This document shows positions 48,807 through 50,001 of a DNA stretch of 64,000 nucleotides, piece by piece; position 1 is the first letter of the stretch; every line of letters begins with the position of its first letter. The position numbers were made by a program, and so were the translations under genes. The stretch is taken from contig CDRNST010000025.1 in the NCBI GenBank assembly GCA_977016875.1, positions 2,542,001 through 2,606,000 on the forward strand, read 5' to 3'. Origin of the DNA: Pavona decussata (Eukaryota). The notes under the pieces are model-generated. The model saw only the letters and a list, made by a program, of their open reading frames with translations. It searched no databases and had not been told where the DNA came from.

Positions 48807-50001
48807 ATGGAAGAAAATTCAGAGTACCAAGAAAGCATTGAATCCCACCAACATGAACTTGGATATAGAAGAGAAGAGGGAGAGGAATACAGACTTCTAG
48901 CCTGGTCGTATTACTCTCTTAAAGACTACCAACAAAGTGTTGAACATGGTAAAGAAAGCTTAAGTATTGCTAAGGAAATTGGAAATATACAAGCGGATGG
49001 AGAGGCATGTATTGTTCTAGCGTGGTCGTATCTCAATCTTAAAGACTACCAACTAAGTATTGAACACGGTAAAGAAAGCTTAAGTATTGCTAAGGAAATT
49101 GGAAATATGCAAGCAGAGGAAGGCGCGTATAGAGTTCTAGCGTGGTCGTATTACTTTCTTAAAGACTACCAACTAGGTATTAAACATGGTAAAGAAAGCC
49201 TATGTTTTGCTAAGGAAAATGGAAATAGACGCGCGGAGGAAGAAGCGTATAGAGTTCTAGCGTGGTCTTATTACAATCTTAAAGACTACCAACTAAGTAT
49301 TGAAAACGGTAAAGAAAGCCTAAGCATTAGTCAGGAAATTGGAAATAGTCGAGCAGAGGAAGGCGCGTATAGAGTTCTAGCGTGGTCGTATTACACTCTT
49401 AAAGACTACCAACTAAGTATTGAACATGGTAAAAAAAGCCTAAGTATTGCTAAGGAAATTGGAGATAGACAAGCAGAGGAAGAAGCGTGTTATGTTCTAG
49501 CGTGGTCGTATTACTATCTTAAAGACTACCAACAAAGTATTGAGCACGCCAAACAAAGTCTTGGCATCTCTAAAGAAATAGGTAATGACATTGTAGAGCA
49601 GAAATCTTACCAGATACTAGCAAAGTCGTATAAAAGTCTTGGAGACCACAAACAAGCCACTGAATGGGTTAACCGGGAAATAAGAGGAGCAGAGTCGTCT
49701 TGCAGTCTTGAAGAATACAAAGAAGCCAGTGAAAGCAACCTTCAAATGCAAATTACAGAAAAAGGTTTTGATGAATCATCAGACTCAGTGNNNNNNNNNN
49801 NNNNNNNNNNNNNNNNNNNNNNNNNNNNNNNNNNNNNNNNNNNNNNNNNNNNNNNNNNNNNNNNNNNNNNNNNNNNNNNNNNNNNNNNNNNNNNNNNNNN
49901 NNNNNNNNNNNNNNNNNNNNNNNNNNNNNNNNNNNNNNNNNNNNNNNNNNNNNNNNNNNNNNNNNNNNNNNNNNNNNNNNNNCTTTCAAACGATAGTTCA
50001 G
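48807..50001 (+). CDS. Copy 2 first coding exon: TPR repeat array
   Basis: ATG preceded by an in-frame TGA, then seven 40-aa TPR-type repeats. Donor TCA G|gtaata (phase 1) follows an N gap at 49791-49982, so continuity across the gap is assumed. Confidence 0.85.

Follow-up and report, generated by a model that had tools for sequence, protein, structure and literature searches.

The window analysed here is a stretch of 64,000 nucleotides from the coral Pavona decussata (assembly GCA_977016875.1, contig CDRNST010000025.1, positions 2,542,001 to 2,606,000 of the forward strand). It carries an exon made of tandem tetratricopeptide repeat (TPR) units, which is apparently the first coding exon of a predicted ROCO gene; Roc and COR exons follow in the window, and GT4, OTU and Death exons follow beyond it (Table 1). 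Comparison of the units with those of related arrays in the same genome supported a putative diversifying ligand-binding surface on an animal ROCO protein, because amino-acid change was in excess at exactly the canonical groove positions of the TPR. The array is probably the ligand-recognition module of a coral ROCO protein composed of TPR, a Roc-COR switch, GT4, OTU and Death.

Tandem Repeats Finder detected a period of 120 bp at 48855-49548 (5.8 copies, 83% matches, zero indels) and a second period of 240 bp with 87% matches. A hidden Markov model (HMM) of the family unit matched six units over the full length and also the cap behind them (15 bits), and no other place in the window. With Pfam, the exon matched TPR_12 (9.2e-29, 99.9 bits against a cut-off of 30.1), and TPR_2, TPR_10 and TPR_1 also passed their cut-offs. 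The layout of the exon, with lead, units, cap and tail, was common to all paralogs. The initial annotation of this DNA had described seven units; the in-frame 120-bp array is real, but it contains six true units and a degenerate cap. The codon series that it had read at 48915+120n was exact, namely TCT, AAT, TTT, AAT, ACT, TAT and, in the cap, AGT, encoding S, N, F, N, T, Y and S, and the residue pairs listed at unit positions 3-4, 7-8 and 10-11 were all matched. All six units of this array carry Trp at TPR position 9; at position 6, unit 1 has Leu and units 2 to 6 have Val.

A six-frame search of the same genome found ten close arrays with 68-76% protein identity. Nine of them, all in plus orientation, share the contig of the window and lie within 350 kb; the tenth is on another contig. 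The number of internal units ranges from 4 to 10 per paralog, and all ten array exons retain open reading frames. For the analysis of variability we used 61 non-redundant internal units from 9 paralogs, all in register and indel-free, with canonical TPR numbering, in which the core residues Y/C4, L7, A8 and Y11 correspond to the consensus W4, L7, G8 and Y11.

The highest entropy was found at TPR positions 2, 13, 6, 5 and 9 (2.35-3.06 bits), and all other positions had 1.62 bits or less. It is reported that the most variable positions of TPRs in general are 2, 5, 9, 12, 13, 33 and 34, all on the concave face, and that the ligand-contact residues of HOP are positions 2, 5, 6, 9, 12 and 13 (Magliery and Regan, PMC1261162). 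The top five positions of the coral units all fell inside the six-member HOP contact set, with a chance expectation of about 9e-6. On a helical wheel, positions 2, 5, 6, 9 and 13 cover an arc of 100 degrees, opposite to the conserved core of positions 4, 7, 8, 11 and 14. Combinations of residues at these five positions were almost never repeated (58 distinct in 61 units). The third base was T in 50 of the 61 codons at position 13, which carried 13 residues, and in 59 of 61 at position 6, which carried 11 residues. Seven variable positions of the unit had been pointed out before; TPR 2, 5 and 13 belong to the selected class, while TPR 37, 38, 1 and 4 (unit positions 3-4, 7 and 10) were not elevated and were ordinary or dimorphic. 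Positions 6 and 9 are detectable only across paralogs, because they are invariant or nearly so in the array of this window.

LGN, in its Leu-Gly-Asn motif, and the coral TPR-CHAT arrays have Asn at position 9 (48903+120n in the window); 35 of the 61 family units had Trp instead. Trp at this position would place an aromatic ladder along the presumed groove. In the cap and exon tail (49581-49790 and the equivalents in paralogs), non-synonymous divergence (0.119) was higher than silent divergence (0.093), with the variation concentrated in the first helix of the cap.

For the analysis of selection the units were placed on a nucleotide tree, and rates were estimated with our own fixed-effects codon likelihood (GY94-type, F3x4). 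The global ratio of non-synonymous to synonymous rates (omega) was 0.75. Position 2 taken singly had an omega of about 8 (p 1e-4), which survived correction for 40 sites, and position 13 had a non-synonymous rate (beta) of 4.4 against a synonymous rate (alpha) of 0.96. When positions 2, 5, 6, 9 and 13 were pooled, omega was 4.5 (p 2.5e-6), and the a priori set of positions 2, 5, 9, 12 and 13 gave 2.9 (p 8e-5). Omega of the other 35 sites was 0.52, with 0.40 in helix B and 0.47 at the remaining sites of helix A. When the five codons were left out of the tree, omega was 6.3 (p 9e-9) for the top-five set and 3.7 (p 2e-6) for the a priori set. In the 43 units whose arrays precede intact Roc exons, omega was 6.1 (p 5e-7) for the HOP contact set and 0.45 for the rest. 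A tree-free comparison of 13 independent close unit pairs gave 0.29 non-synonymous changes per codon at the five positions and 0.09 elsewhere, with synonymous changes of 0.046 and 0.053, respectively. The excess of non-synonymous change at variable sites, for which the initial annotation had proposed a site-wise test across paralogs, was thus found at TPR 2, 5, 6, 9, 12 and 13 (omega 3-6, against about 0.5 elsewhere).

Two other explanations of this pattern were considered and rejected. A mutational hotspot does not fit the synonymous rate at the five codons, which was only 0.4-0.7 of the mean. Nor do the neighbouring helix-A codons, with an omega of 0.47, fit an artefact caused by segmental gene conversion in that helix.

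With the paralogs supplied as alignment, AlphaFold2 gave a model of the exon that had a predicted local distance difference test score (pLDDT) of 89.4 and a predicted template modelling score (pTM) of 0.78, and showed alternating helices of 17 and 18 residues. The top 24 PDB matches of this model in Foldseek were all TPR domains of LGN/Pins, nearly all as peptide complexes, with template modelling (TM) scores of 0.70-0.82; the best of them had TM scores of 0.75-0.82 and root-mean-square deviations of 2.1-2.7 Å. Phmmer against the PDB also matched Pins/LGN (4.5e-28 to about 1e-27), ungapped and in register, and position 9 was aligned to the Asn of the Leu-Gly-Asn motif. On this modelling, the six units and the cap are predicted to fold into a TPR superhelix of LGN/Pins type. 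The repeats of LGN turn their helix A to the interior of the superhelix, and ligands line the inner groove (PMC6525239, PMC5844954). The earlier suggestion that helix A lines the groove agrees with this, as the variable residues are on helix A, which is inner-facing in LGN/Pins, the closest solved structures (PMC6525239).

Domains downstream of the TPR exon were called exon by exon, each scanned separately (Table 1). The TPR, Roc and COR exons are on one strand in consistent order, with a phase-1 donor at 50002, and this layout recurs in at least six paralogs. The predicted order of the gene is TPR, Roc, COR, GT4, OTU and Death, and the assignment of the array to a ROCO gene is supported by the exons behind it, Roc and COR first and then GT4, OTU and Death. 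No match to NACHT or NB-ARC was found in any exon scanned, and Roc was the sole nucleoside triphosphatase (NTPase) between the repeats and the effectors. Among public reads, the best run shared at most 38% of the words of the exon, and the Logan contigs of four runs were 36-314 nt long, fitting several units or paralogs. Of the runs with shared words, those that carried a label were all coral metatranscriptomes.

Table 1. Coordinates of the TPR array, of the exons of the predicted ROCO gene and of example TPR-CHAT loci. Positions are those of the window unless a locus name is given.
Feature	Position	Strand	Evidence or remark
TPR exon, apparently first coding exon of ROCO gene	48807..50001	+	ATG 48807, GT donor 50002 (phase 1), open reading frame and translation
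N stretch inside TPR exon	49791-49982		written N in window
Six canonical 120-bp (40-residue) TPR units, LGN/Pins type	48861..49580	+	Tandem Repeats Finder, register, unit HMM
Seventh unit, degenerate TPR cap	49581..49700	+	orthologous in all paralogs; unit HMM 15 bits only
Focal codon, TPR position 13, last residue of helix A	48915..48917	+	recurs +120n to 49515
TPR-position codons of unit 1	48882..48905	+	position 2 = 48882, 5 = 48891, 6 = 48894, 9 = 48903; recur +120n
Roc GTPase exon 1	51806..52162 (open frame holding exon)	+	Pfam Roc 1.7e-6, 28.7 bits against cut-off 27; P-loop GQDRAGKTS intact
Roc GTPase exon 2	54149..54958 (open frame holding exon)	+	Pfam Roc 2.3e-7, 31.5 bits against cut-off 27; DxxG (DFAGQ) and THxD-type motifs
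COR-A exon	59724..60038	+	Pfam COR-A 8e-7, 29.5 bits against curated 35.3, exon scanned singly
Exon after COR-A, presumably COR-B, Cys-rich tail	62797..63585	+	no Pfam match
GT4-conflict exon, beyond window	L031 3100-4488		PF20706 6.6e-89
Two OTU exons, beyond window	L031 9707-10000 and L032 463-867		OTU 1.6e-5
Death exon, beyond window	L032 3314-3619		Death 3.2e-11
Example TPR-CHAT loci	G000:C225:163000-172999; C391:134000-143000; C56:5335000-5344999		

The window also contains parts of a second ROCO gene and mobile elements. A second copy of Roc exon 2 (7083-7835, plus strand, 90% identity) comes from an upstream gene, the TPR units of which are not in the window. Between the two ROCO genes there are a non-LTR (long terminal repeat) retrotransposon frame with endonuclease, reverse transcriptase and zf-RVT (12061-15896, minus strand) and a DDE_Tnp_4 transposase frame of Harbinger type (19268-20617, plus strand). 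The intron between the Roc and COR exons (56200-59200, plus strand) has open frames of 100-190 residues without Pfam match, which are mobile-element-like.

Roc exon 2 was present in nine copies in the cluster, on the same contig, with 85-91% identity, and one of them has a stop. Four further copies with 61-64% identity have in-frame stops (G000:C25:2432810, 2486295, 2675322 and C114:1796894). They are located downstream of arrays L006, L004, L005 and L002, whose TPR exons remain open. These copies may be a diverged dying subfamily or may belong to a subfamily with an extra intron there.

Arrays L004 and L005 (G000:C25:2479695 and 2669317) are 190 kb apart and almost the same, as a single amino acid of the units differs between them. 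Either a segmental duplication happened very recently or the assembly contains this array twice. The next copy downstream of the gene studied (L032 5830-6117, about G000:C25 2619830) has only the tail of the TPR exon, the whole array being lost, and is followed by Roc exons with 91% identity. It is either a natural array-less form or a dead copy.

A word-indexed protein search with the exon gave two matches only, with 34-35% identity. An exhaustive search of a representative library had a best match of 38-40% identity, which was a TPR-CHAT protein, and no close orthologue was found in it. A scan of metagenome contigs gave no match above 28% identity.

From the selection pattern and the gene order we propose the following mechanism. 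The stripe of helix A (TPR 2, 5, 6, 9 and 13), which is groove-facing in the solved relatives, changes its amino acids 3-6 times faster than silent sites change, and the remaining 35 positions are kept by purifying selection. The groove of each paralog would differ, and the paralogs may bind distinct ligands or distinct variants of one ligand. Binding would be relayed through Roc-COR to the GT4 and OTU effectors and to Death-domain signalling. The protein could then be a GTPase-based analogue of the innate immune or cell-death receptors of NOD-like receptor (NLR) type.

Several points weigh against this proposal. The sensor role is read from the architecture and the selection pattern. When tested singly against their own synonymous rate, positions 5, 6, 9 and 13 were borderline (beta/alpha 3-5, p 0.05-0.12), so that the significance of these four positions depends on pooling and on the family-wide silent rate. 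Trees of 120-nt units are poorly resolved, and possible gene conversion between units is unmodelled by standard site tests. The placement on the concave face comes from the register of LGN and HOP and from helix periodicity, not from measured solvent exposure. In addition, part of the family may be decaying, since the Roc exons downstream of four of the ten arrays contain stops.

The surface may be diversifying while the protein is no sensor of non-self, if the paralogs are specialised on endogenous partners such as regulators of ubiquitin, glycosylation or cell-death pathways. LGN/Pins, the nearest relatives with solved structures, use this groove to bind endogenous partners, and nothing found for this gene points to pathogens. 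However, an omega sustained far above 1 in many units, tandem birth and death, and the fusion of GT4-conflict, OTU and Death fit the conflict or immune pattern (PMC8195603), and co-evolution with a stable partner rarely gives as many as 58 combinations in 61 units. We therefore regard specialisation on endogenous partners as unlikely.

The second alternative is relaxed constraint, by which the exposed groove residues of a young, partly decaying family drift neutrally. The four arrays upstream of stop-bearing Roc exons of 61-64% identity would be expected from it, and so would the array-less copy downstream and the high global omega of 0.75; moreover, positions 2, 5, 9, 12 and 13 are the least constrained in TPRs generally (PMC1261162). 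But neutrality predicts omega near 1, and we found 3-6, with omega = 1 rejected at p 1e-4 to 1e-8. The signal was stronger, not weaker, in the arrays with intact Roc exons (omega 6.1), the other 35 positions were under purifying selection (omega 0.45-0.52), and reading frames were open in all ten array exons. It means that neutral drift is very improbable as the origin of the pattern.

The initial annotation had considered the array as highly homogenised and its 120-bp units as near-identical even at silent sites. This is not matched with the data. Pairwise comparison of the six units gave a mean DNA identity of 82% (74-91%) and a mean protein identity of 71% (60-82.5%), and the mean silent-site divergence (pS) among them was 0.30. 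Units 3 and 5 were the closest pair, with 91% DNA identity, and were unique in having zero silent differences; the 11 base differences between them, in 9 codons, all changed the amino acid. The 240-bp period and the closeness of units 3 and 5 suggest a duplication of a two-unit block. The description of the second helix as nearly constant is roughly right, but positions 22, 23, 24, 26, 29, 30, 31, 32 and 34 each varied in at least one unit. Repeats of high internal conservation (HIC) are defined by at least 85% identity over at least 100 residues (Dyrka et al. 2014, PMC4986451). As protein identity in the coral array was 71% on average and 82.5% at maximum, the array is outside the fungal HIC class, although another trait of that class, a few positively selected positions on the binding face, was found here (omega 3-6, p 1e-4 to 1e-8).

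In the tree of units, the first units of the paralogs grouped together, and the last units likewise, while the middle units were mixed. Middle units had a pS of 0.153 within arrays and 0.180 between arrays, and 22 of the 43 middle units had their nearest neighbour in their own array, where 10% would be expected. Recent duplications were seen in one paralog with three nearly identical consecutive units, in two with unit pairs of 93-98% identity and in one with a three-unit block duplication; overall, unit pairs within arrays reached up to 93-99% identity. The non-repeat flank of the same exon had a pS of 0.093 between paralogs, which is below every class of unit-to-unit comparison (0.15-0.30). 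Reshuffling by unequal crossover, which had been suggested before, agrees with the different unit numbers among paralogs and with the recent unit and block duplications, but the order was mostly collinear, and the reshuffling was modest since reciprocal best matches between arrays kept the unit order in 57 of 63 comparisons. The picture from these sequences is that the arrays probably change by occasional in-register gain and loss of units, perhaps with some exchange, and not by strong ongoing homogenisation. Rapid re-programming and somatic variation, which had been included in the same suggestion, are not supported.

A HIC array of fungal type, with near-identity by concerted evolution and rapid, possibly somatic, re-programming through unequal crossover, is thus the least probable of the alternatives: the recent whole-unit and block duplications within arrays, middle units that look as if from one pool and the TPR-CHAT arrays of this genome that reach 85% protein identity with identical units would be matched with it, but the identity of the units (71% protein, 82% DNA) is under the 85% criterion (PMC4986451), their silent divergence exceeds that of the flank between gene copies, and the first and last units are orthologous across paralogs in collinear order.

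In the arrays of this family whole units are gained or lost in register, with recent duplications of one, two or three units. For the proposed ligand-recognition module, diversity would arise in the germline at the pace of gene duplication, by selected point substitution and occasional unequal crossing-over. This corrects the idea of fungal-style homogenisation, as the diversity would come mainly from selected substitution, plus occasional gain and loss of units. A constant scaffold with few selected groove residues is known in fungal NLRs and in brown-algal ROCO proteins, and its site-wise behaviour is hardly examined in animals. The same logic appears here on a coral Roc-COR GTPase fused to conflict-type effectors (GT4, OTU and Death), and five positions per unit can be named as probable setters of specificity. 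It gives a concrete, testable candidate for how corals may recognise varied partners or enemies without adaptive immunity.

We tentatively raise a further possibility, which at present is rather doubtful, that the ROCO cluster is a GTPase-based counterpart of NLRs in corals, reading non-self ligands through a Trp-lined groove with a code of five residues per unit and triggering OTU and Death signalling. Glycan or glycoconjugate ligands are conceivable, since the Trp residues at position 9 would form an aromatic ladder and the predicted gene includes a fused GT4 glycosyltransferase. If arrays differ between haplotypes or individuals, as a non-syntenic cluster in Acropora suggests, they could contribute to pathogen, symbiont or allorecognition specificity in a colonial animal. 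A literature search, with incomplete coverage, found no account of site-wise selection in coral TPR arrays or of such a coral ROCO receptor.

Among known systems, LGN/Pins (GPSM2; PDB 3SF4, 3RO2, 4WND, 5A6C and 6HC2) has the same 40-residue unit and superhelix, and its groove holds extended peptides. LGN is, however, a conserved single-copy polarity protein with Asn at TPR 9, whereas the coral family is expanded and diversifying, with a variable residue there that is mostly Trp and with six to ten similar units in each array.

The TPR-CHAT genes of corals (TTC28-like) share the 40-residue TPR type and the variable positions, but carry a caspase-like protease and no GTPase. In this genome several hundred distant matches (30-40% identity) were genes of one exon, in which a run of 14 to more than 30 units of this type precedes a CHAT caspase-like domain. 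Some of these arrays had 85% protein identity and identical units, with variability within the array mostly at positions 2, 5, 6, 9, 12 and 13. Of four arrays put through the pooled selection test, one gave a significant result (omega 3.6, p 0.006). Expansion of TPR-CHAT is published for Acropora and Montipora (PMC12314368, PMC9145168), in accounts that cover copy number and domain content, not site-wise selection. In Acropora a gene cluster with TPR plus glycosyl-transferase-1 was reported in haplotype non-syntenic regions, and the word 'Roc' occurs 0 times in that paper (PMC12314368). The published Acropora cluster is probably this gene family.

In fungal NLRs, uniform repeats occur together with few positively selected concave-face positions and polymorphism of repeat number (PMC4986451), and a 2026 survey (Ament-Velasquez and Saupe, PMC13449251) reported such repeats also in NLR-like proteins of animals, plants and bacteria. 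Fungal HIC NLRs (WD40 repeats of HET-E/HET-D, and the NB-ARC-TPR protein Pa_2_10340 of Podospora) resemble the coral gene in tandem superstructure-forming repeats beside an NTP-dependent switch, in selected concave-face positions, in variable repeat number and in gain and loss of units in register. They differ in the switch, which is NACHT or NB-ARC in fungi and Roc-COR in the coral, and the coral repeats are N-terminal, with 71% identity and unhomogenised silent sites.

Ectocarpus has clustered ROCO genes with leucine-rich repeats (LRR), and diversifying selection acts on concave-face positions of these repeats (Zambounis et al. 2012, PMC3341825). These LRR-ROCO and NB-ARC-TPR candidate pathogen receptors are also clustered birth-and-death families with selected N-terminal repeats and gain and loss of units. 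However, the algal LRR-ROCO genes have one LRR per exon and exon shuffling, whereas the coral array is one TPR exon, in an animal host, with C-terminal GT4, OTU and Death.

In bacterial Roc-COR conflict systems the LRRs at the N-terminus evolve fast and the effectors at the C-terminus include GT4 (Kaur et al. 2021, PMC8195603), and a large GT4 expansion is known in corals (PMC8195603). The order of variable repeats, Roc-COR and effector in these AP-GTPase (Roc)-COR systems is shared with the coral gene, and the GT4-conflict family (PF20706) is the same. The bacterial systems have LRRs, whereas the coral gene has TPRs, added OTU and Death, introns and a eukaryotic tandem array. As predicted exon by exon, the coral gene has the layout of an AP-GTPase conflict system, with fast-evolving TPRs, Roc, COR, GT4-conflict, OTU and Death. 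By analogy, the coral case is a combination of fungal, algal and bacterial themes in an animal, with a putative TPR sensor array on a Roc-COR switch.

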